From the IMG/VR virus record IMGVR_UViG_3300017593_000998, positions 1 to 12,529 of that record: a stretch of 12,529 nucleotides of DNA. One strand, written 5' to 3'. Shown in pieces: positions 1 to 9,079 of the stretch. Positions within the stretch are counted from its first letter, which is position 1. Every line of letters starts with the position of its first letter. The translations under genes were made by a program, and so were the position numbers. Under the pieces are notes generated by a model, which searched no databases, was not told where the DNA came from, and saw only the letters and a program-made list of their open reading frames with translations.

Positions 1-1013
1 TCGCCACCGCACGACTCAACGCACTGGTCGTAGCTGTCCATCGCCGACTGGACGAAGTTGAGGTAGTACTTGAAGTTCTCGGAGCGCCTCGATTCCATCC
101 TATCAAAGGTCACGCACACGGTGGCCACTATGAGGGCCACGAGGATTAGTGCCACGATGTACCCCGGAATTGGCAGTCCGAGCCCGCCGACACGGCGCAC
201 CGGCATGTAAACTATGTATCCGTCGCTCGTCTCCTCGACGTACGGCCCGGTGACGGCCTTTCCAGAGTCCGTAGTGTAGGGCGTCGGGTCAAGCGCCAGC
301 CCGAAGCCCGCCAGCAGGTTCTGGATGTCGTCAATCTGGCCCTTTATCTTGCGCTCGTAGACGTACTCGGCCACCGAGCTGAAGCCCGGAATCTTGTAAA
401 CGATGCCCTCCGGCTTCTTGTAGTAGAACTTGAACACGTCCCTGTCGGCGGTGAGCGTGGTGAACGGCATATCGAGGAGCCTTGCCTCGTAGCCGACCCA
501 GTAGTAGCCGTCCGGGATGACTACCGTTTGCAGGTCCATGCACCCAAGTACCGGGTCGTAGCGCGTGCACACCTGCAACTGCCTGGTCTTTAGGTTGGAG
601 CTCGGGTAGCGGCCCCACATGACGCCCGACTTCCACTCCCTATACTGCGTTTCGAGCGGCCTGTCCTCCGGCTTGTTCAGCCCGGCGTAGAGCAGGTGGG
701 TCGCCGTCTTGTAGTCCACGAGCAGGACTGGAAACATGGTGGCGTACTGCCTGCCCTGCTCGTCCGTCTTGACGTAGTACTGGAGGAAGATACGGTGGAC
801 GTTCGGCGAGTAGCGCACCCTTATGTCGCCGATGACCTTCTCCTTGTACGTGCTGAGCACCTGCGACGGGATCTGGAAGGTCTCCGGGTCAAAGGGGACG
901 TACATCACAGTGCCCCAGCCCCCCACCTTGAAGAGGTTGAGCGCTGGCGCGTCAGTAGGTTCAAGGGGCGGGCTGACCGCTATCAGCTTACCCTCCTTAA
1001 CCAGCATGGTCAT
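1..1013 (-). CDS. Membrane protein, >337 aa, truncated by the window edge; contains a diverged copy of the W/Y-rich repeat domain and a TM helix (absent from the ORF track)
   Basis: ATG at 1013 after GGGGGAGGCGGTGA, 3 nt past the upstream stop. The frame is open to the window edge: MTMLVKEGKLIAVSPPLEP...LLYAGLNKPEDRPLETQYREWKSG...DGYYWVGYEARLL...GLPIPGYIVALILVALIVATVCVTF (TM)...DSYDQCVESCGG. Confidence 0.9.
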   Translation of the reverse strand, partial: MTMLVKEGKLIAVSPPLEPTDAPALNLFKVGGWGTVMYVPFDPETFQIPSQVLSTYKEKVIGDIRVRYSPNVHRIFLQYYVKTDEQGRQYATMFPVLLVDYKTATHLLYAGLNKPEDRPLETQYREWKSGVMWGRYPSSNLKTRQLQVCTRYDPVLGCMDLQTVVIPDGYYWVGYEARLLDMPFTTLTADRDVFKFYYKKPEGIVYKIPGFSSVAEYVYERKIKGQIDDIQNLLAGFGLALDPTPYTTDSGKAVTGPYVEETSDGYIVYMPVRRVGGLGLPIPGYIVALILVALIVATVCVTFDRMESRRSENFKYYLNFVQSAMDSYDQCVESCGG

Positions 1014-1016
1014 AAC

Positions 1017-1448
1017 TCACCGCCTCCCCCTAGTTCCAGCGTAGTCGAGCGCCAGCAGGATTAGGGCGTAAGCGCCGAGAAGCTTCAGCATCCCAATCAT
1101 GTTGCTCTTGCTGTCAACTGTCAGCTTTGCGGGGTACTGGACGAGGTACCACAAACCGTCGCTCTGGCAGTACTGCCTCTCCAGCTCAACGCCGTTCATC
1201 CAGTTCTGCACAATCTGGTCAACCGTATGGTCGGGTGGCTTGGAGGGGCTCTTGTAAATGACGCGCACCTTTGAAGGGTCGCCGTAGATTGTCAAATGAG
1301 CCCCCATCACGTCCGGGTTTACCTGCTTAACTATGTCGGTAACGTCAATTATTGGGCTGGTCTGGTTCGCCCATCTCACAAGGCGCGGGCTGTTCTTGTA
1401 GGTGTTCACCATCCCGCTTATGAGCGTCTCGACGCTACACTCCACCAT
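1017..1448 (-). CDS. 143-aa protein: one copy of the W/Y/C-rich repeat domain plus a C-terminal membrane anchor
   Basis: RBS GGAGGTGA 5 nt before ATG. Clearly homologous to the N-terminal domain of 2354..4390 (WANQxSP, DVT, LTIYGD, NWxxGVExERQYCQxDGxWY). Ends MIGMLKLLGAYALILLAL followed by RGRR. Confidence 0.9.
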   Translation of the reverse strand: MVECSVETLISGMVNTYKNSPRLVRWANQTSPIIDVTDIVKQVNPDVMGAHLTIYGDPSKVRVIYKSPSKPPDHTVDQIVQNWMNGVELERQYCQSDGLWYLVQYPAKLTVDSKSNMIGMLKLLGAYALILLALDYAGTRGRR

Positions 1449-1460
1449 GCTATCACCTCC

Positions 1461-1928
1461 TCAGCCGAACAGCAGTATGCCGCCGATAATCAGGGGCAGG
1501 AGCAGGTTGCCGCCCTCCTCCTCAGCGGGCGCCTGTGCCTCCCCCGTCGTCTCCGGTGTCTTTGTCGCCGTGCCCTGTATGGTGACGACGAAGCTGTCCC
1601 CGGCAATCTTCTCGCCGTCGGGCCCCCTGAACTCGACGACGAACCGCACCGGCCCGCTCACCGGCACGGCGTTACTGGGGCAAGTGATTGGGTAACCCGT
1701 CACCGTGTAGCCCTCGACGACGGTGCAGTAGGGCACCTGGACTGGAATCTCGACGTAGAGCGGCGGCTGGAGGTCGAGGACGGGGCTGGTCTGCCACTCA
1801 AGGCCGGCGCCCCTGACGACGAAGTACCCGCTGACCGGTGGCTGTGCGTAGTCGAGGACGACCTGGATGTTCATGACTTCGCCCGACCGATAGACAGACC
1901 TGTCGGGCCTCGCTGACATTACTACCAT
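1461..1928 (-). CDS. 155-aa protein: complete Ig-like domain, acidic linker and C-terminal TM anchor
   Basis: RBS GGAGGTGG. Ig-like opening PDRSVYRSGEVMNIQV. Last two strands GPVRFVVEFRG and EKIAGDSFVVTI. One Cys pair. Ends in hydrophobic LLLPLIIGGILLFG. Confidence 0.85.
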   Translation of the reverse strand: MVVMSARPDRSVYRSGEVMNIQVVLDYAQPPVSGYFVVRGAGLEWQTSPVLDLQPPLYVEIPVQVPYCTVVEGYTVTGYPITCPSNAVPVSGPVRFVVEFRGPDGEKIAGDSFVVTIQGTATKTPETTGEAQAPAEEEGGNLLLPLIIGGILLFG

Positions 1929-1944
1929 CTTTCACCACCTCCTT

Positions 1945-1999
1945 TGAAGGCTGGGGGCCCCCACCGTGGACGGCGGAGGGTCAGCCTCCGGCTCCTTCA
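1945..1999. other. GC-rich, highly self-complementary intergenic segment
   Basis: TGAAGG (1945-1950) and CCTTCA (1994-1999) enclose the palindrome TGGGGGCCCCCA (1952-1963), CCGTggACGG (1964-1973) and CGGAGG-gtcag-CCTCCG (1974-1990). Confidence 0.45.
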
Positions 2000-2332
2000 G
2001 ATTGGCACAGCGTAGTCCTCCGGAACGTACATACTGACGCTAACTGACCCGGTGTACGTTCCTGAAGTCGTCGGGGCCGTGAAGGTGAACGATTTGCTCC
2101 CTCTGCCTTTAGAGCCGACTGATATAGTGCCGCTCTGTGTCTTTCCGAATAGCTTGGCTATAATGGAGAAGTTTGCTGAAAACGGGTTGGGGTTGTCCAC
2201 TGTAACAGTTACCGTCACGGGCTCCCCCGGGGCAACTGCCGTTTTGTTTAGGGCTACGTCGAAGCTACCTTTTTGGGCCACCGGCTTCACGGTTACGCTC
2301 ATAGACCTGGTTCCCAGGCTAATCCACCCCAC
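1997..2332 (-). CDS. 111-aa protein: N-terminal putative donor strand plus a CARDB/Ig-like domain apparently lacking its last strand
   Basis: RBS GGGGGTGA upstream. Starts MGWISLGTRSMSVTV. Ig pattern LNKTAVAPGEPVTVTVTVDN...KSFTFTAPTTSGTYTGSVSVSMY, then only VPEDYAVPI*. Confidence 0.88.
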   Translation of the reverse strand: MGWISLGTRSMSVTVKPVAQKGSFDVALNKTAVAPGEPVTVTVTVDNPNPFSANFSIIAKLFGKTQSGTISVGSKGRGSKSFTFTAPTTSGTYTGSVSVSMYVPEDYAVPI

Positions 2333-2353
2333 TCATATCACCCCCTACAATTT

Positions 2354-4390
2354 TTAGTAATACGCGTAAAGCTCGACCTTAACCCCATGCTCACCCACCT
2401 TAACATCCGGGGGGACTGTTATTGGGGCCTCGATTATCGTCGGGCTTGTGGTTGCAGTGACCTCTTCTGACTCGTAGTGCCTGCCGAATGCGTCAATGCC
2501 GAGCTTGAACTTTAGACTACCCGGCGCCTCCCAGTTGACTTTTGCTATTATTTTCAGGGTGTCGCCGGCCGCTACTGTGGTCTTGTCAACGCTGGCCTCC
2601 CAGCCGATTGTTGGAGCTGTTACGTAAACCTGCTTTGACATTGCATAGAACCCACTATCAGAGTATCTAAGCAATATCAGCGTGAGCGTGTGGTAGCCAG
2701 TTGATAGTGGTGGTAGCTTTGCAACTTTCGTGAACCTTCTCTGCCCGGCCTTCCAAGCGTCGTAGTTGACCTCTACCTGGTCAACCAGCTTGCCGTCCAC
2801 GAATAGCTTCGCGCCCCAGGGCCTTTCGTAATGTGTCACGTACCCTCCAACGTCATAGTTGTAAGCCACAACTCTTACGTAACCCTCAACCCCAAACTCT
2901 ACTGTCCCATCGCTCCTTATATTTAGTATTGGAGTCGCCCTGGGTGCATTGTACTTAAATTCGGCCGGTATCTTGACCCAGTACCACTTTCCGCTCTTTG
3001 AAGAGTACATTCTTTCCATTTCGTAGCCTTCCAGCCAGCCCTTGACCACCTTAGTGCAGAAAGTATAACCATCGCTGTACCTGTCGGGCGGTTTGTCCCA
3101 GCCGTATTCAATGACTTCAATCTGGCTCGGCCTGTCTAGGTAGAGCTTCACCGTGCCGCCACTGGAGTAGTTGTCGTCTGCGTATCTTAGGCGGGTTCCG
3201 AATACAGTTATTTCGTCCAAGTATTCATAAGTTGGGTACTTTCTGTTCATCGTTGACTTCAGCTTGCTCTCGACGTTTATTGTCGGGGTCTTGCTCCCGT
3301 AGTAGGAGACGAGCGAGTTAACGAAGTCTTGGACAGAAGGCTCCTGGGTTCCCGGGATGACCCATGAGTACTGTGCACTCTCGTCCTCAACCCAGCCACC
3401 GCTGTAAAGCTCCACGAGGCCCTTGAGCGTGTACTTTCCGGGCAGGTTTGGCATCTTGAAGGTGAATGAGCCAGAAGTGCTCTTACCACTAGCAAGGTAG
3501 TACTCCTTCGAATACACCTGGACGACCTGAGAGTTCGGCTGTACCAGGAGAAACCTAAGCCTGAATTTGTAGCTCTTGTCCCAGCCGTTGGTGTGCGTCC
3601 AGTTTACAGTCACGGTCTCTCCAAGGCCGGGGTTGGACGGGCTAAGCTTGAAGGAGAACCTTTTCACCGTTACTGCCTCAGTCTCTATGTCGAGCTTGCA
3701 CGGGTAGAGAACCCAGTACCACTTTCCAGTCTTACTGCACTGTACCCTCTCCCACTCCTGGCCAGCCATCCAGTTCTCAACGATGTTCTTCAGCGCCTCA
3801 GTGCCGTACTTCTCAATGACGGCCGGCCTGCCGTCATAGTACTTATCTGGCTTGGTGTCGTACGGGCCGATTATCTTCTGGGGCTTGCTACGATAGACTG
3901 TAAGAGTGCCCCTTATGACCTTCGGCTGGACCACGTACTGGTCAACAATGCCAGTCACGTCAACAACCGCGTCCTGCTGAACAAAGTCATTCAGAACGCA
4001 GGGTAGGGTTAGGGTGCCCTGGACTTCGAGCTTGCACGGGTAGATGACCCAGTACCACTCGCCGTCCTCCTGGCAGTACTGGCGCTCGAACTCGACGCCT
4101 GCCAGCCAGTTGTGGAGGATGTTCCACCTCGCCCTGTCGCCGTACACGCCCACGTCGGCCGGCCTGCCGTCCGGGTACGTGGTGGGTTTTGTGGAGCCGG
4201 CCTTGACGATTTTTATCCTCGCAAGGTCGTCGCCGTAAATGGTAAGGGTGGCCTTGGTGACCTTTGGGCAGACCGCCCTGACCGTCTCGGTGACATCAAG
4301 GACTGGGGAGTACTGGTTAGCCCAGCTAATGGCAGTCTTGGAGTAGTTGTTCACCATTCCGTCCCTGAATATTTTAGCGTCGCACCCCAC
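2354..4390 (-). CDS. ~678-aa modular surface or spike protein: repeat-repeat-Ig-repeat-Ig-Ig (last Ig incomplete)
   Basis: Start moved to GTG at 4390: it follows RBS GAGAGGTGA, and MGCDAK parallels MVECSV of the 143-aa paralog. Three copies of the W-x-x-G-x-E-x-E-R...G-x-W-Y-W-V domain and three Ig-like segments. Ends GEHGVKVELYAYY*. No signal peptide or TM. Confidence 0.92.
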   Translation of the reverse strand: MGCDAKIFRDGMVNNYSKTAISWANQYSPVLDVTETVRAVCPKVTKATLTIYGDDLARIKIVKAGSTKPTTYPDGRPADVGVYGDRARWNILHNWLAGVEFERQYCQEDGEWYWVIYPCKLEVQGTLTLPCVLNDFVQQDAVVDVTGIVDQYVVQPKVIRGTLTVYRSKPQKIIGPYDTKPDKYYDGRPAVIEKYGTEALKNIVENWMAGQEWERVQCSKTGKWYWVLYPCKLDIETEAVTVKRFSFKLSPSNPGLGETVTVNWTHTNGWDKSYKFRLRFLLVQPNSQVVQVYSKEYYLASGKSTSGSFTFKMPNLPGKYTLKGLVELYSGGWVEDESAQYSWVIPGTQEPSVQDFVNSLVSYYGSKTPTINVESKLKSTMNRKYPTYEYLDEITVFGTRLRYADDNYSSGGTVKLYLDRPSQIEVIEYGWDKPPDRYSDGYTFCTKVVKGWLEGYEMERMYSSKSGKWYWVKIPAEFKYNAPRATPILNIRSDGTVEFGVEGYVRVVAYNYDVGGYVTHYERPWGAKLFVDGKLVDQVEVNYDAWKAGQRRFTKVAKLPPLSTGYHTLTLILLRYSDSGFYAMSKQVYVTAPTIGWEASVDKTTVAAGDTLKIIAKVNWEAPGSLKFKLGIDAFGRHYESEEVTATTSPTIIEAPITVPPDVKVGEHGVKVELYAYY
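3690..4059. repeat. 34-bp direct repeat (32/34 identical) at 3690-3723 and 4026-4059; a 17-bp part (3711-3727) recurs at 2976-2992
   Basis: tcgagcttgcacgggtaga(ga/tg)acccagtaccact, encoding the WYWV(L/I)YPCKL ends of the repeat domains. Confidence 0.85.
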
Positions 4391-4395
4391 TGCTA

Positions 4396-4557
4396 TCACC
4401 TCTCCCTAGACATTAGGGCTATCGCCAACCCAGCAGCACCAAGCACTAAGAGCAGGCCAGACCCCTTGTCACCAGTCGGCGAAGGCGTTGGGGAGGGGGT
4501 CGGTGTAACGACCTCCACCGAGAACGTCTTTGAACCAACTGGATACCAGCTAGCCAT
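4396..4557 (-). CDS. 53-aa micro-protein: putative donor strand, Pro/Thr linker and TM anchor (absent from the ORF track)
   Basis: RBS GGGGGTGG 4 nt before ATG. MASWYPVGSKTFSVEVVTPTPSPTPSPTGDKGSGLLLVLGAAGLAIALMSRER*. Its stop lies in the RBS of the next gene, so it fills the gap exactly. Confidence 0.88.
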   Translation of the reverse strand: MASWYPVGSKTFSVEVVTPTPSPTPSPTGDKGSGLLLVLGAAGLAIALMSRER

Positions 4558-4569
4558 TATACCACCCCC

Positions 4570-4677
4570 TCAGTAGTAGGCCTCCAGCCGGACTGAACCC
4601 TGGTAGGTTCCCGGGTTCTGCGGTGCGGTGAACGTGAATGTATGGTCCCAACCACGTGCCACGTCGCCATCCAGCAT
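4570..4677 (-). pseudogene. Frameshifted or internally deleted paralog of the 111-aa Ig-like subunit
   Basis: ATG at 4670 gives MATWHVVGT (donor-strand-like). A different frame (ATG 4677) gives MLDGDVARGWDHTFTFTAPQNPGTYQGSVRLEAYY*, whose end matches SFTFTAPTTSGTYTGSVSVSMY of 1997..2332. Confidence 0.65.
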
Positions 4678-4711
4678 CCCCCCTTTTTGTTGTACGTGTA
4701 ACTAAACTGGT

Positions 4712-5035
4712 TTAACCAAACATGTGGTTTAACGCCCAGATTAGCAGCCCGCTGGATATAGCAATTGAGATTATAACAGTGGCCCCTTTTACCTTGTCTC
4801 GAAAGGATTCCAGTTGCTCGACTTTAAGCTCCAGTTCTTTTATCCTCTGGTCGGTGTCTGCCTGGTACATTTCCACCATCTCCTTCAGTTCGTCATTGTT
4901 TTTTTCCAGCATGCTAATGATTTCATCGAGCCTGCTCTTAACCCATTCAAGGTCAGTAGATAGCTTGGCGATTGCCACCCCCATATCCATCATTTTTTGG
5001 CTGAGGCCGTTTCCGGAGTTCTCCCCGCTCCCCAC
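4712..5035 (-). CDS. 107-aa coiled-coil protein with C-terminal TM helix (architecture like XhlA/holin-type viral membrane proteins)
   Basis: RBS GGGGGCGG before GTG. Heptad-like LSTDLEWVKSRLDEI...IKELELKVEQLE, then hydrophobic ATVIISIAISSGLLIWAL. Confidence 0.8.
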   Translation of the reverse strand: MGSGENSGNGLSQKMMDMGVAIAKLSTDLEWVKSRLDEIISMLEKNNDELKEMVEMYQADTDQRIKELELKVEQLESFRDKVKGATVIISIAISSGLLIWALNHMFG

Positions 5036-5060
5036 GCTACCGCCCCCTTTACGCCGTTGG

Positions 5061-5348
5061 TCAGTCCCAGTCCTCCATCTCGGAGCGCTGGTCAGTGAGG
5101 CTCTGGTGCAGGACGTCGTGGAGCTGGGCCACGTCGAGCTTCAGCGCCTCCACGTCGTTGCGGAGCCTGGCGACCTCCTCGCTGAGCTGGCGGGCTTCCC
5201 TCTGCAAGTCCATGACCATGCTCTCAACCAGCTCGACCTTACCGTTGCTGACAGCTGAGCCGACCCTGCTGAACAGCCGGTACATGACCAGCGCCACGAG
5301 CGTCCCGCCGGCCAGCACCGAGACGAAGGCCCCCGTGTCAAACATCAC
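5061..5348 (-). CDS. ~95-aa protein with N-terminal TM helix and coiled coil
   Basis: AFVSVLAGGTLVALVMY, then heptads LQREARQLSEEVARLRNDVEALKLDVAQL. Overlaps the upstream stop. Start at GTG 5348 or ATG 5345. Confidence 0.8.
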   Translation of the reverse strand: MMFDTGAFVSVLAGGTLVALVMYRLFSRVGSAVSNGKVELVESMVMDLQREARQLSEEVARLRNDVEALKLDVAQLHDVLHQSLTDQRSEMEDWD

Positions 5349-5712
5349 TGCGCACCGCCCCCAGTGTTATCTTTTTCCTCAGCCAGCCGTCGGAGAGCGT
5401 TATGGTCACTCTGTGGCCGGCGAACTCCTGTGCCGCCAGCCACACCGTCGCCTCGTCGCACACTTCCAGCTCCACCGAGCCGTGCGCCTCCTGCTGACCG
5501 TCGCCCTCTATCAGGATGATGAAGTCGGTGCCAGGCACGTCAATCCCGACGTTCACGCACTTGAAGTACGGCCTTATCCAGACCCCGAATATCAAGCCGC
5601 CGCTCTTCGTCATCCTGACCTCGTTGCCCTCGACGCCTAGCAGTTTGTACTCTGCTGGCCCACGCCCGGAAAGGAAGTAAAGGAGCCGGCGGAGGAGTTC
5701 ACCGAACCTCAT
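5338..5712 (-). CDS. 124-aa hypothetical protein, beta-rich with an amphipathic N-terminus
   Basis: Fills the gap in the operon; starts 6 nt after the upstream stop. No family recognised. Confidence 0.7.
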   Translation of the reverse strand: MRFGELLRRLLYFLSGRGPAEYKLLGVEGNEVRMTKSGGLIFGVWIRPYFKCVNVGIDVPGTDFIILIEGDGQQEAHGSVELEVCDEATVWLAAQEFAGHRVTITLSDGWLRKKITLGAVRSDV

Positions 5713-5718
5713 AGCGCA

Positions 5719-6189
5719 TCACGGGAACGTTACTGTGACGTAGATGTCAAGCAGGATTGAGCTGTCCTTCGTTATGGCCGGGTCGATGGTCACGTGGTTG
5801 AACAGGGTTCCGGTAGTGTAGTCGTTGCCGTCCGTGTGCTCGTAGATGCCGGCCTCGGTGTAGGTGTAGCCGTTCGCGTCCTCCGGCAGGTAGCGGACGT
5901 AGTACTGGACTGTGTTGTTGCTCACGGTCACCTGTCCTGTCTTGGCAGAGCTGGGAACGGCGGTGAACAGGCCGGTGTCGTTTTCGCTCGGCGTCCCCGA
6001 GCCGGTTCCGAGGACGAGGAACCAGTTCGAGGAGCCCTGGCCCTGGCCCCACGCCTGGGCAAACATCTGCTTGGCGGCGGTCGTCAGGACGTTCTTCCTC
6101 TCCACAACGTTTACAACTTCGCCGGTCTCGGCGTCCCTGGCCACGAACTTCCAGGTCGCAACCGCCCCGACGGTTTCCCCAACCTTCAT
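5719..6189 (-). CDS. 156-aa virion protein, phage tail-collar/fibre-base-like (DUF3751-like), paralog A
   Basis: RBS GGGGGTGA. Motif chain NVLTTAAK...LVLGTGSGTP..NDTGL...EDANG...TEAGIY...GTLF...ITKD...LDIYVTV, typical of this widespread phage structural family (recognised by eye). Confidence 0.75.
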   Translation of the reverse strand: MKVGETVGAVATWKFVARDAETGEVVNVVERKNVLTTAAKQMFAQAWGQGQGSSNWFLVLGTGSGTPSENDTGLFTAVPSSAKTGQVTVSNNTVQYYVRYLPEDANGYTYTEAGIYEHTDGNDYTTGTLFNHVTIDPAITKDSSILLDIYVTVTFP

Positions 6190-6202
6190 AACATCACCCC
6201 CC

Positions 6203-6886
6203 TTATGGCAGTATTTTTATTGTGACATAAACGTCGAGTATGATGTCGGGCGTCTTCTCAATGCTCTGAGGGAGTAGGGCGTGTTCGAAGAGCACACCCG
6301 CCGTGTAGCGGTCGGGCGGGATGTAGTACTCGGCGTAGCTGTAGTCGCCGACCTGGTACCACTTCGGCGGTATGTTCTCGTAGATGCCGACCTCAGTGAA
6401 CGTGTAGCCGTTCAGCTCCTCGGGCATGTAGCGGACGTGGTACTGGAAGCCCCTGACCCCGCCCGTGCCGTCGAGGTACGTCAGGTCGGCGTCCGAGCCG
6501 TAGGGGAACGGCGTTATGTTCACGTGCCAGCCGCTCTGGTCGTGGGTGATGCTTATGGCCGCCCCGTCCTGGCCCTCCCCACGGGCGCTCTCGGGTACGG
6601 CCTGGAACAGGTCAGTGTCGCTCACGTCAGGCGTCCCGCTCCCGGTGCCGAGGACGAGCGCCCAGTACGGGCGGACATAGTAGCCGATGTCGTTTGGGCA
6701 GATAGGGTTTGAGGCCGGGTTGAGCCGTTTGGCCACGTACTTTCCCGTGAGCCAGGCCTGCCGGAGCAGGTCAGCGCCGGCGTTTGTTATGACGTTCTCG
6801 GTCGTTACCTCCTGCACCTTGCCCGTGCGGACGTTCGTCGCCACGACCCGGACGACGCCCTTAACTCCAAGCTCATCTACCCTCAT
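6203..6886 (-). CDS. 227-aa virion protein, tail-collar/fibre-base-like, paralog B with three insertions
   Basis: Start moved to ATG 6886 (RBS GGGGGTGG, directly after the upstream stop at 6888). Shares LVLGTGSGTP, AVPxSA, YxVRYxPExxNGYTxTExGIYE and ILLD/IILD with paralog A. Confidence 0.78.
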   Translation of the reverse strand: MRVDELGVKGVVRVVATNVRTGKVQEVTTENVITNAGADLLRQAWLTGKYVAKRLNPASNPICPNDIGYYVRPYWALVLGTGSGTPDVSDTDLFQAVPESARGEGQDGAAISITHDQSGWHVNITPFPYGSDADLTYLDGTGGVRGFQYHVRYMPEELNGYTFTEVGIYENIPPKWYQVGDYSYAEYYIPPDRYTAGVLFEHALLPQSIEKTPDIILDVYVTIKILP

Positions 6887-6887
6887 A

Positions 6888-8096
6888 TCAACCACCCCCG
6901 GCGTAGCGTTCAAACTTATTCAAGGTATAGTTTGTCGCCTCAGGCAGGCTCATGACGGATGGGTCGCTCTCGTCGGTCGTGTTGTTTGGGTTCAGCTCCA
7001 CGAAGAACCTCGTCTCGCTGTCAATGCCTATCCAGATGACCGCTTGTGGTGTTGAAGTGTCCCAAGTCTCGATGTAGTACGGCAGGCTGTAGCGTGCTGA
7101 GGCATACGCAATTCTAATGTCCGAGCCGTCAGCGTTTGCTTTTATGAAGTCAAAGTTCGAGCCGTCGAGGTCAATTGCAACTTGGAAGTGCTCTAGGTCA
7201 TAGTTGTTCGGGTTGGTGATTGTTATCTTACGGCGGTAGAGCCATCCGGAGATGTCGCTTGATTCTTCTTCGCCTACAACAATAGTTGGCTCTTGCTCGG
7301 CATACTTGCGGACACGAACCCAATCAATAAGCGTCTCCATACTTGCATCGTATGCACTTTTCTGAAATATCATCACGTAACCAGAGAAAGCATTTGTCTG
7401 CGTAATACTCGCTGTATTACCATCCCAATATCCTATATGTATATTCCCATCTGTCTTTATTCCTACTTGATGCCATTCGTTGCCCGTAATTGTCGCCAAC
7501 TCGCTTGATACCACTGAATTTCCGTCGTTAGAGACTATCCTTGTCGGATAACCCGAGCGGTATTTTAATTCCAGTCTTACGAGTGGTGCTTGCTCTGATG
7601 TCTGCGATGACGATAGTTCTAAGTGTACAGTATATGAACTCTTTAGCATAACCCTTGCCTCAACTACAAGAGGTTGTGTGAATGTGCGTTGTGTCGCCAA
7701 ATAGATTTTATTTGCAGCCCCTATACTTGTCTTAATGTCAAGTATGCTGTCTGATACTGTAATCGATGTCGAACCTTCTTCTACTAGTGTCCACTTTGTT
7801 GTGTCAACCGATGAACCCTCAAAATCATCATATAAGTCAAACACCTGCTCTGGGTCGCTCTCGCTCACCGCTGAGGGGTTTCCGTAGTAAACATACAAAT
7901 CAACGCTACTGTTAGCAGGGATTTTTGGCACTTTGACCCATACTTTTCCCTGCCCGTTTTGAGCGTCCCATTTTTCTATCCAGTACGGGAGTTTCCACGG
8001 CAAGCTCCACACCCTAACCGCTTCCCTCTTATTCTGAGCGTCGTCAAAAAACCTTTGAGCCGTAACCGTCAACTGCACCCTTTGAGTCGCCATCAC
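6888..8096 (-). CDS. ~401-aa DUF2341-containing protein with a central concanavalin/LamG-like beta-sandwich; candidate receptor-binding protein
   Basis: DUF2341-type motifs LPYWIEKWD...VWVKVPKIP...LYVYYGNPSA..SD...VF..YDDF, DWVRVRKY...EP, and WLYRRKITI...FQV.IDLD...FDF.KA..DGSDIR. Confidence 0.85.
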   Translation of the reverse strand: MMATQRVQLTVTAQRFFDDAQNKREAVRVWSLPWKLPYWIEKWDAQNGQGKVWVKVPKIPANSSVDLYVYYGNPSAVSESDPEQVFDLYDDFEGSSVDTTKWTLVEEGSTSITVSDSILDIKTSIGAANKIYLATQRTFTQPLVVEARVMLKSSYTVHLELSSSQTSEQAPLVRLELKYRSGYPTRIVSNDGNSVVSSELATITGNEWHQVGIKTDGNIHIGYWDGNTASITQTNAFSGYVMIFQKSAYDASMETLIDWVRVRKYAEQEPTIVVGEEESSDISGWLYRRKITITNPNNYDLEHFQVAIDLDGSNFDFIKANADGSDIRIAYASARYSLPYYIETWDTSTPQAVIWIGIDSETRFFVELNPNNTTDESDPSVMSLPEATNYTLNKFERYAGGG

Positions 8097-8104
8097 TCAC
8101 CACC

Positions 8105-9079
8105 TCACGTCACGCTATATTCGGCATACCACTCGCTTATGTCAAACGCACCCGTTCCGGCAGTCGTGGAGTAGTACTCCAGGGTGTCTAAGCTGTCTTG
8201 GGTTTCTTGAGGCGTTAGGGTCTGCACGGATACCACGTTTAGCGTTAGTTCGTCATAGGTGCTCTGCTGTTCGCTTATGCTGGAGGACATCATCACCTGA
8301 TATTCGGCGTACCACTCGCTTATGTCAAACGGCGTGCTGGCGGGCCCCGTTGATGTCAGCACCCTATCATGTGCATACACCGACTCGGCAAAGGCCCTGA
8401 TGACCAGCGCCTCATCGTCCTGCGGGACGTAGCCGGCCGGTATGTCGTCAGACCACTGGCGCTCGTCGAACCTCAGCACCTCGGCGGAGGCCGTGCTGGT
8501 GCCGAACGCCTCGCTTGTCTGTGCGGTCTCATCGAAGGTCAGCGTGACGGCCTGCGCCTGGTAGGTTGATATGCTGTCCTCGGGCACTACTGGCTCGTCA
8601 AAAGAGGGCGTGAGTATCTGGCCCGACCACACCTCGAAAGAAACCGAGTCGTCAATCGTCTCATCGAACGCCTGCACCACCACGTCGGCGGTCGAAACGG
8701 ATATTGAGGTGCCCGACTGCTGGGCTTCATCAAAGTATCTGCGCACGGCGTCGGCGGTCGTGTAGCTCAGGCCGTCGGTGCTGGTCTGCTCCTCTTCCAG
8801 CGCCCGAATTACCAGCGGTCTTGTCACGGCACCCACGTCTTCTTGTAGGACTTCAATTAACTCCTTAGCAATGTCGTCGTACGTGGCCACCACCACGGCG
8901 TCCCCGGCGCTCGCCATCTCACGGACGGTGTAGATGTATCGGTCTCTGATGACCACGAGCGTTATGTCGCCGCTGTGGTGCACTTCGGCCTCAACTGCCT
9001 TGCTGAGCAGGTCAATTAACCTCCTCGGCCCGAGCCTCGTACTGCCAACCTTCAGCACCGACGGCCAGCGCCCATTCAT
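8105..9079 (-). CDS. 324-aa acidic protein with about nine to ten ~22-aa repeats; candidate spike/fibre shaft or scaffold
   Basis: FDE recurs five times at exact 22-aa spacing, with further degenerate units. FDISEWYAEY occurs twice near the C-terminus. Confidence 0.85.
   Translation of the reverse strand: MNGRWPSVLKVGSTRLGPRRLIDLLSKAVEAEVHHSGDITLVVIRDRYIYTVREMASAGDAVVVATYDDIAKELIEVLQEDVGAVTRPLVIRALEEEQTSTDGLSYTTADAVRRYFDEAQQSGTSISVSTADVVVQAFDETIDDSVSFEVWSGQILTPSFDEPVVPEDSISTYQAQAVTLTFDETAQTSEAFGTSTASAEVLRFDERQWSDDIPAGYVPQDDEALVIRAFAESVYAHDRVLTSTGPASTPFDISEWYAEYQVMMSSSISEQQSTYDELTLNVVSVQTLTPQETQDSLDTLEYYSTTAGTGAFDISEWYAEYSVT
8117..8331. repeat. 32-bp direct repeat (31/32 identical) at 8117-8148 and 8300-8331
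   Basis: atattcggc(a/g)taccactcgcttatgtcaaacg, 183 bp apart and in frame, encoding FDISEWYAEY. Confidence 0.9.

Follow-up and report, generated by a model that had tools for sequence, protein, structure and literature searches.

Ig-like domains split at gene boundaries suggest strand complementation between predicted spike proteins of an uncultivated virus

In the chaperone-usher pili of Gram-negative bacteria (type 1 and P pili), Ig-like subunits lack the C-terminal G strand, and the groove is filled by an N-terminal extension of the next subunit, a process of donor-strand complementation and exchange. The tip subunit is acceptor-only and carries extra binding domains, and the order of subunits is set by gene-encoded specificity. 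Archaeal threads (Saci_0406, with the putative cap Saci_0405) and archaeal bundling pili also assemble by donation of an N-terminal tail strand to the next subunit, without a bacterial-type chaperone or usher, and a neighboring co-expressed gene supplies a terminal subunit (bioRxiv 10.1101/2022.04.26.489512; PMC12337348). In SpyTag/SpyCatcher, an engineered split of the CnaB2 Ig-like domain, the last strand is a short separate peptide that docks back and rebuilds the fold. Literature searches for a donor-strand system in a virus found none.

Here we analyzed a window of 12,529 nt, the whole stretch of IMG/VR virus record IMGVR_UViG_3300017593_000998, from an uncultivated and unclassified virus. 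A preliminary description proposed that three ORFs end right after the F strand of an Ig-like domain and three begin with a related strand. The sequences on which it was based are present on the minus strand, and the observation was confirmed, except that the window contains two intact donors and two intact acceptors rather than three of each. The features are as follows:

2354..4390 (-), tip protein gene, 678 aa from GTG 4390 (the mechanical ORF from GTG 4399 gives 681 aa)
2357..2611 (-), putative acceptor, the C-terminal Ig-like domain of the tip protein (residues 597-681 in 681-aa numbering)
3356..3673 (-), internal complete Ig-like domain, the covalent reference form
2333..2353 (-), spacer of junction 1
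1997..2332 (-), adaptor gene, 111 aa
2282..2332 (-), putative donor strand of the adaptor (residues 1-17, MGWISLGTRSMSVTVKP)
4396..4557 (-), anchor gene, 53 aa, with its putative donor strand (residues 1-17) at 4507-4557 and a membrane helix (residues 35-49) at 4411-4455
4562..4693 (-), pseudogene remnant of a 102-aa-type adaptor gene
1461..1928 (-), gene for a 155-aa protein with an Ig-like domain that has its own last strand, a linker and a C-terminal membrane helix
1017..1448 (-), gene for a 143-aa protein with one domain X and a C-terminal membrane helix

The tip protein gene ends ...ELYAYY, with TAA at 2356-2354. Its likely true start is GTG 4390, preceded by the ribosome-binding site GGAGAGGTGAT, in agreement with the 678-aa gene call. 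The AlphaFold2 (AF2) model of this protein (mean pLDDT 89.3) shows, in order, an orphan domain X, a second domain X, a complete Ig, a third domain X, a beta-sandwich, and a C-terminal Ig that lacks strand G. Domain X, an alpha/beta domain, had no Pfam or PDB match by sequence, and fold searches with the whole 681-aa model returned only generic multi-Ig proteins. In the internal Ig, strand F comprises residues 321-332, the turn is SGG, and strand G is W336-I348, so that the covalent F-turn-G form lies at 3356-3451. In the C-terminal Ig, the last strand is 674-680 and the chain stops after F. This C-terminus is conserved in 8 of the 13 aligned homologs as ...TLYYE or ...TLYAYY.

The adaptor gene starts at GTG 2332, 5 nt after the ribosome-binding site GGGGGTGAT (2345-2337), and its product begins with the missing W-x3-G-x5-S-V-x-V strand (motif score 23.5 bits). 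W3 and G7 are among the most conserved columns of the family. The AF2 model (pLDDT 92.8) contains six strands (23-28, 38-46, 53-61, 64-72, 77-85 and 96-101), with an Ig core without a G strand, followed by a conserved 10-residue tail (residues 102-111, YVPEDYAVPI). This tail makes the acceptor status of the 111-aa protein less clear; it might cap its own groove. Best fold matches are Ig-like/CARDB domains. The 53-aa anchor consists of the putative donor strand (32.2 bits), a Pro/Thr linker, one membrane helix and the basic tail SRER. The 155-aa protein, on reading of its sequence, is the covalent counterpart of acceptor plus anchor, and has a homolog of 152 aa in the related locus L025. The 143-aa protein has no donor strand, unlike its 164-175-aa relatives.

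We next examined whether the stops could be errors or be read through, with one long multi-Ig protein as the real product. Junction 2 is in frame with a single TGA, which closes a 35-aa ORF 12 nt before ATG 4557 of the anchor gene, and one fused relative exists (P0096, see below). However, the 21-nt spacer of junction 1 carries two further in-frame stops (TAG, TGA) after the TAA, so read-through is excluded at this junction. Junction spacers in this and related loci are 1-22 nt long and lie in different phases, and each has a GGTG-type ribosome-binding site and a start codon, with up to three stops; some related loci have overlapping genes. The loci come from many samples and assemblers. Read-through or recoding was therefore rejected as very unlikely.

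The preliminary description counted MATWHVVGT (4670) among the ORFs that begin with the strand and ...EAYY* (4570) among those that end after strand F. Comparison with the adaptor gene of L025 showed that these 37-aa and 35-aa ORFs (4570-4677) are the 5' and 3' ends of one internally deleted gene, and they were rejected as a third functional donor/acceptor pair. Window positions 4693-4643 are 77% identical to the 5' end of the L025 gene (E 1.6e-6), and 4641-4562 are 69% identical to its 3' end (E 2.4e-4). The ribosome-binding site and first 9 codons (frame of 4670) abut the last ~26 codons (...FTAPQNPGTYQGSVRLEAYY*, frame of 4677), with about 209 nt missing and the junction near 4642. The same 154-nt interval is present in loci L015 and L017.

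To investigate whether the layout is conserved, diverged metagenomic loci (numbered with the prefix L) were compared, and it recurs in at least 13 of them. The gene order is 556 aa, 102 aa and a 60-aa anchor in L007; ~670 aa, ~220 aa and ~165 aa in L004, L006, L012 and L019; 682 aa, 111 aa and 175 aa in L018; 193 aa, 108 aa and a ~50-aa anchor in L022; 106 aa and a 56-aa anchor in L023; and 102 aa, 89 aa and a 51-aa anchor in L025. L008 and L011 are more distant variants. Equivalent anchors of 38-60 aa occur in L007, L011, L022, L023 and L025. These anchors consist of nothing but the strand, a low-complexity linker and a membrane helix, so the conserved strand has no domain of its own to fold with.

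A donor-motif matrix built only from non-window sequences gave 9 hits of at least 14 bits in six frames of 8 loci. All 9 were at gene N-termini just after the previous stop, against 0 hits in 106,651 shuffled positions. Over 14 loci there were 22 N-terminal hits, 20 of them at most 56 nt downstream of an acceptor-type C-terminus. The type of acceptor tail covaries with donor residue 3 (AYY with W in 8 of 8, DLGG with V in 4 of 4, and YYE with F, Y or S in 4), although the loci are related to each other and these counts are not independent. The adaptor family is broad, with 337 profile hits that include about 15 clusters (at 50% identity) of 94-126-aa proteins with a donor N-terminus, about half of them ending ...AYY. 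The adaptor profile, including its donor part, aligns colinearly to internal positions of covalent multi-Ig proteins, directly after an AYY-type F strand, where the segment is the G strand of the preceding domain. In P0096, a natural fusion, the two parts are joined through a Gly-rich spacer that reads like a translated ribosome-binding site.

The motif could in principle have another role, such as a sorting, processing or glycosylation signal, or a ligand for a host strand-exchange pilus, with the acceptor domains being stable six-stranded folds. There is no direct evidence for binding, and hosts of this kind of virus may carry donor-strand filaments such as archaeal threads (bioRxiv 10.1101/2022.04.26.489512). 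This reading is unlikely, because the motif is homologous, residue for residue, to the F-G turn and G strand of covalent family members, and because of the covariation of its residue 3 with the upstream tail.

Alternatively, the N-terminal strand may complete the Ig domain of its own protein in cis, the gene order being only a trace of an ancestral tandem-Ig gene that broke up. Monomeric pilins self-complement in vitro, and residues 1-20 of the 111-aa model have a pLDDT of about 85 although unpaired, which suggests a defined position, so that some packing against its own domain cannot be excluded. However, DSSP assigns no strand to residues 1-17, the anchors and the 164-220-aa proteins carry the strand without any Ig domain next to it, the strand belongs to the preceding domain in covalent relatives, and acceptor-only proteins would be left permanently incomplete. 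We consider this alternative improbable.

The interpretation in the preliminary description was supported in part. Its core idea holds, in that Ig-like domains are split at gene boundaries and the N-terminus of the next protein corresponds to the missing strand. The roles it assigned (678 aa as acceptor-only tip, 53 aa as donor-only membrane base) fit relatives that encode tip, adaptor and anchor in that order (L007, L022, L023), whereas the filament that would follow from its suggestion that the 111-aa protein could self-polymerize is less likely in this window than a discrete spike.

Our preferred explanation, to which we assign a probability of about 0.7, is that the region encodes a modular surface spike whose subunits are joined non-covalently by beta-strand complementation of Ig-like domains cut exactly in the turn between strands F and G. 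In this view, the tip protein is the distal part, with three copies of domain X, possibly for receptor binding. The N-terminal 15-17 residues of the adaptor would supply the missing strand of its C-terminal Ig, and the adaptor's own Ig would probably be completed by the N-terminal strand of the 53-aa protein, which would tie the assembly to a membrane. No chaperone or usher would be involved, the partners being supplied by adjacent, separately translated genes. Splitting inside the domain would let tips, adaptors and anchors be exchanged as cassettes between related viruses. In this window, the anchor gene lies upstream of the tip gene, behind a dead adaptor gene, so the pairing of the 111-aa acceptor with the 53-aa donor is a guess, and the anchor could instead bind the tip directly. 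Our analysis establishes the split, its conservation, its homology to covalent domains, and the missing strand in the models. Insertion of the strand in trans, including its fit and orientation in the groove, the pairing of donors with acceptors in this window, any self-association into a filament, location on a virion envelope (and a virion membrane itself), and the function of the tip are inferences.

A further possibility is that the 102-111-aa adaptors, having both donor and acceptor, polymerize head to tail into a true filament on the particle, with an acceptor-only protein at the tip and the small anchor at the base, as in a chaperone-usher pilus but without the assembly machinery. The adaptor has the architecture of a pilin, with an N-terminal extension and an Ig domain lacking strand G. 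L025 encodes a 102-aa adaptor, an 89-aa acceptor-only Ig and a 51-aa anchor but no large tip, and both acceptors end in nearly the same residues, so nothing obvious prevents self-pairing. One acceptor type also accepts different donors in different loci. On the other hand, the 102-aa-type gene in this window is a pseudogene, the 111-aa type has the extra tail, and loci with two junctions use two different tail/donor types, which argues for ordered 1:1 pairing. The filament reading is therefore doubtful. If viruses of this lineage did build pilus-like filaments or spikes on a membrane-bearing particle purely by complementation between products of adjacent genes, with a membrane-anchored donor peptide as the base and no assembly machinery, which is likewise unlikely but not excluded, the 102-aa-class adaptors would be the first viral "pilins". 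This might explain the very stable thin filaments seen on some spherical archaeal viruses.

To investigate kinship with known viruses, the GenBank phage and archaeal-virus set was searched by megablast and tblastn. No match was found for the whole window by DNA, nor for the 681-aa, 239-aa, 111-aa or P0037 proteins, and there was no tblastn hit to Pyrobaculum spherical virus. PHROGs gave only weak tail-fiber-like families for neighboring genes. The viral origin rests on the IMG/VR label and these weak hits; no capsid or packaging gene was identified. A pattern scan of GTDB genomes with the tip-protein alignment found no relative, and the single donor-pattern hit, in an Anaerolineales MAG, is a chance 25-codon ORF.

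If confirmed, strand complementation in this virus would extend the principle from cellular pili to virus particles, and show that it can work without a chaperone, an usher or secretion signals, simply by cutting a domain at a gene boundary. It would also explain how these viruses swap receptor-binding tips, adaptors and anchors as cassettes; the pseudogene in the window and an anchor remnant in L010 are consistent with such turnover. The donor and acceptor segments would further provide natural peptide/domain docking pairs that might serve as protein-engineering connectors, comparable to engineered split Ig domains.

Comparison with chaperone-usher pili shows that the models share the Ig-like subunit lacking strand G, and a conserved N-terminal motif is present, whose action as a donor strand is inferred. 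However, no PapD-like chaperone or usher family was found by Pfam in any of the 19 window proteins scanned. The N-termini (MGCDAK..., MGWISLG... and MASWYPVG...) have no hydrophobic leader by inspection, and no membrane helix was seen in the tip protein. In the inferred assembly, the base is a donor peptide fused to a membrane helix, the partners are different proteins from adjacent genes rather than a homopolymer, and the context is viral. A profile of 19 adaptors searched against all PDB chains gave a best E-value of 0.011, to designed Ig proteins, and no pilin, including solved thread or bundling-pilin chains. Archaeal thread subunits are secreted with a cleaved signal peptide, form long homopolymers and are cross-linked by isopeptide bonds, whereas the assembly inferred here is heteromeric and membrane-anchored, and the conserved K/R at donor position 9 argues against a conserved isopeptide bond.

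The fold is that of CARDB/BatD-type Ig-like domains and tandem-Ig surface proteins. Best structural matches include the CARDB domain of Pyrococcus PF1109 (TM about 0.6), and the profile hits giant tandem-Ig proteins, in which every domain is covalently complete. Pfam scores were below the curated cut-offs (CARDB, PF07705, 18.0 and 14.5 bits against 22.7; BatD, PF13584, 23.4 against 24.1), including weak hits to residues 251-326 of the tip protein. In the modular receptor-binding proteins and tail-fiber adaptors of tailed phages, conserved N-terminal docking segments likewise allow distal binding modules to be swapped between related viruses, but phage fibers usually dock through trimeric N-terminal domains rather than by completing a partner's Ig fold, and the inferred base here is a membrane anchor, not a baseplate. 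Lastly, the split in SpyTag/SpyCatcher is man-made and locks by an isopeptide bond, whereas the one described here is natural, recurrent in a virus lineage, and probably non-covalent.

All plausible genes of the 12,529-base window, a complete IMG/VR contig (IMGVR_UViG_3300017593_000998), lie on the minus strand. Read in that direction, the region of interest contains the following features:
5035-4712, minus strand, a 107-aa coiled-coil protein with a C-terminal membrane helix
4677-4570 and 4670-4557, minus strand, two short overlapping ORFs in a 154-nt interval
4557-4396, minus strand, a 53-aa gene
4390-2354, minus strand, the large gene
2332-1997, minus strand, a 111-aa gene
1928-1461, minus strand, a 155-aa gene, with a C-terminal membrane helix
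1448-1017, minus strand, a 143-aa gene, with a C-terminal membrane helix

The preliminary description, in which Ig-like domains were proposed to be split at gene boundaries, was correct in its observation, as all of the peptides it listed were found at their places in the sequence. The large gene ends in ...ELYAYY followed by TAA. The 21-nt spacer that follows contains two more in-frame stops and the ribosome-binding site GGGGGTGAT, 5 nt before the GTG of the 111-aa gene. The 53-aa gene starts 12 nt after the TGA of the 35-aa ORF, again behind a GGGGGTGG site. The large protein most likely starts at GTG 4390 (678 aa), which has a well-spaced ribosome-binding site and matches the 678-aa gene call.

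To test whether the domain is really cut, the large protein was modelled with AlphaFold2 on an alignment of 14 homologues, giving a confident model (mean pLDDT 89.3). The internal Ig-like domain has strand F at residues 321-332, a three-residue turn (SGG) and strand G at W336-I348. The C-terminal Ig-like domain (597-681, in the numbering of a 681-aa ORF) ends with a strand at 674-680, and the chain stops there. The 111-aa protein, modelled from 19 sequences (pLDDT 92.8), has six strands between residues 23 and 101 and no seventh strand, and residues 1-17 are not assigned as a strand. Its best structural matches are Ig-like/CARDB domains, while the Pfam hits to CARDB/BatD are sub-threshold. The donor segments begin with the same Trp that opens strand G in the covalent domain, and the cut therefore lies exactly in the F-G turn.

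The large protein also contains three copies of an orphan alpha/beta domain of about 115 aa ("domain X", with conserved Cys and an ERQxC...GxWYWVxYPC motif; 4010-4387, 3674-4003 and 2942-3346, minus strand). A fourth copy is present in the 143-aa membrane-anchored protein (1113-1448, minus strand), and the domain also occurs in the 160-220-aa proteins of relatives. Sequence searches of Pfam and the PDB did not reveal any match for this domain.

Homologs of the large protein, 51-71% identical over their full length, mostly keep the same abrupt C-terminus, and their contigs (numbered with the prefix L) show the same logic. In L004, L006, L012 and L019, a ~670-aa protein ending ...TLYYE is followed by a ~220-aa protein (donor strand, domain X, Ig ending ...DLGG), and then by a ~165-aa protein (donor strand, domain X, hydrophobic tail). 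L018 encodes proteins of 682 aa and 111 aa, then a donor-bearing 175-aa protein. L007 encodes a 556-aa protein, a 102-aa adaptor ending ...EAYY, and a 60-aa anchor. L008 and L011 contain more distant versions of the same arrangement. A search with a DNA pattern for one donor variant recovered three further metagenomic loci: L022, with 193 aa, 108 aa and a ~50-aa anchor in that order; L023, with a 106-aa adaptor followed by a 56-aa anchor; and L025, with a 102-aa adaptor, an 89-aa acceptor-only Ig and a 51-aa anchor. The only GTDB genome hit to the donor DNA pattern, in an Anaerolineales MAG (L021, 6144-6173), is a 25-codon ORF and appears to be a chance match. The spacers range from overlapping genes to 22 nt in different phases, always with a ribosome-binding site, so these are separate polypeptides. 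In four relatives (L004 7943-8000, L012 2396-2448, L006 1426-1477, L019 4932-4982), a conserved A/T-rich box (AAAATAAAAATAAAG-like) lies about 25-30 nt upstream of the tip gene start. The box resembles an archaeal TATA element, and is the only hint to the host domain.

To investigate the occurrence of the donor motif, a position matrix was built from 13 donor segments, none of them from the window, and run over all six frames. In 8 loci, the matrix gave 9 hits of at least 14 bits, all at gene starts directly after the previous stop, whereas none was found in 106,651 shuffled positions. Over 14 loci, there were 22 N-terminal hits. Twenty of these lay at most 56 nt downstream of an acceptor-type C-terminus, and the other two followed the coiled-coil membrane protein. 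One of the two internal hits is a covalent G strand. The type of acceptor tail tracks donor residue 3 (AYY with W in 8 of 8, DLGG with V in 4 of 4, and YYE with F, Y or S), as expected if the two chain ends meet in the rebuilt hairpin, although the loci are related and the counts are not independent.

We next searched a profile of the adaptors against 1.84 billion representative proteins, which gave 337 hits. These include about 15 distinct clusters of 94-126-aa proteins with the donor N-terminus, about half of them ending ...AYY, as well as acceptor-only small proteins and giant tandem-Ig proteins. Locally, the profile aligns from its first positions to internal segments of covalent relatives (P0030, P0074, P0120), immediately after an AYY-type F strand. 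In another protein, P0096, the acceptor and the donor are fused through a Gly-rich spacer followed by Met, which reads like a translated ribosome-binding site. Fused junctions had been named beforehand as a refutation, on the assumption that they would mean that the stops are errors. The stops are clearly not errors, and the rare natural fusion, which links the two parts, instead shows that the donor belongs to the upstream domain.

The proposed third donor/acceptor pair, in the 154-nt interval, is a pseudogene. Window 4693-4643 matches the 5' end of the intact adaptor gene of L025 (77% identity, E 1.6e-6), and window 4641-4562 matches its 3' end (69%, E 2.4e-4). About 209 nt are missing between them, which shifts the frame. 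The N-terminal peptide MATWHVVGT is exactly the N-terminus of the intact adaptors P0059 and P0070. The same remnant is present in two other contigs, one from another sample, so it is not an assembly slip. Intact relatives (L023, L025) have the order coiled-coil protein, adaptor, anchor, which is the order seen here with a dead adaptor. A second case of a decayed module in this virus group is found in L010, where the spacer after the 452-aa gene (7215-7283) still encodes the last eight codons (FGILYSKE) and the stop of an anchor like the 95-aa one upstream. In addition, a contig from the same sample as the window (L016, Ga0187538_167024) equals window 4503-6146 joined to the reverse complement of window 1-4571, so that the 69 nt at 4503-4571 are present twice, inverted. 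The breakpoints lie at the ribosome-binding site of the anchor gene and inside the 156-aa gene, and this is either an assembly chimera or a real inversion variant.

The interpretation in the preliminary description is supported in part. In the most likely mechanism, the tip protein (678 aa) is completed by the N-terminal strand of the 111-aa adaptor, and the adaptor is probably completed by the 53-aa anchor, although the anchor may instead bind the tip. The only conserved extramembrane element of the anchor is the strand, and its helix and basic tail would fix the complex in a membrane, possibly a virion envelope. The anchors have no domain of their own to fold with, and this is the strongest argument for insertion in trans. 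The 155-aa protein (complete Ig, linker, helix) is the covalent counterpart of acceptor plus anchor. The conserved tail of the 111-aa family (YVPEDYAVPI) may cap or latch the groove, and the 102-aa-class adaptors may or may not polymerize. Our evidence is entirely computational: the position of the cut, its conservation, the homology to covalent domains and the strand missing from the models are shown by it, while insertion of the strand in trans, the pairing and stoichiometry of the subunits, polymerization and the nature of the membrane remain inferences.

The window and L016 further encode a run of proteins with a C-terminal membrane helix and a basic tail but no signal peptide (window 4712-5348 and 1-1007, minus strand; L016 5207-6424). 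These comprise 95-aa and 107-aa coiled-coil proteins, the 53-, 155- and 143-aa proteins, and a 405-aa protein that is cut off at the window end, and suggest tail-anchored membrane proteins of a particle. The neighboring genes look like further attachment proteins (5719-6189, 6203-6913 and 6888-8096, minus strand). The 156-aa and 236-aa proteins are paralogs with weak phage tail-collar-fibre hits (PF12571 below cut-off; phrog_5417 and phrog_18275), and the 402-aa protein has two DUF2341 domains (E 7.6e-35). A 324-aa protein (8105-9079, minus strand) repeats the motif FDISEWYAEY once internally and once at its C-terminus, between Ser/Thr/Gln-rich stretches, and has no family match.

No related gene was found in any deposited phage or archaeal virus genome. 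The collection searched includes archaeal viruses such as Pyrobaculum spherical virus, which shows no similarity. Literature searches found no described viral system of this kind. Chaperone, usher and signal peptides are absent, and no solved pilin is similar in sequence. The system is therefore not a member of the families of chaperone-usher pili or of archaeal threads and bundling pili (bioRxiv 10.1101/2022.04.26.489512; PMC12337348), although the principle inferred here is that of these cellular filaments.
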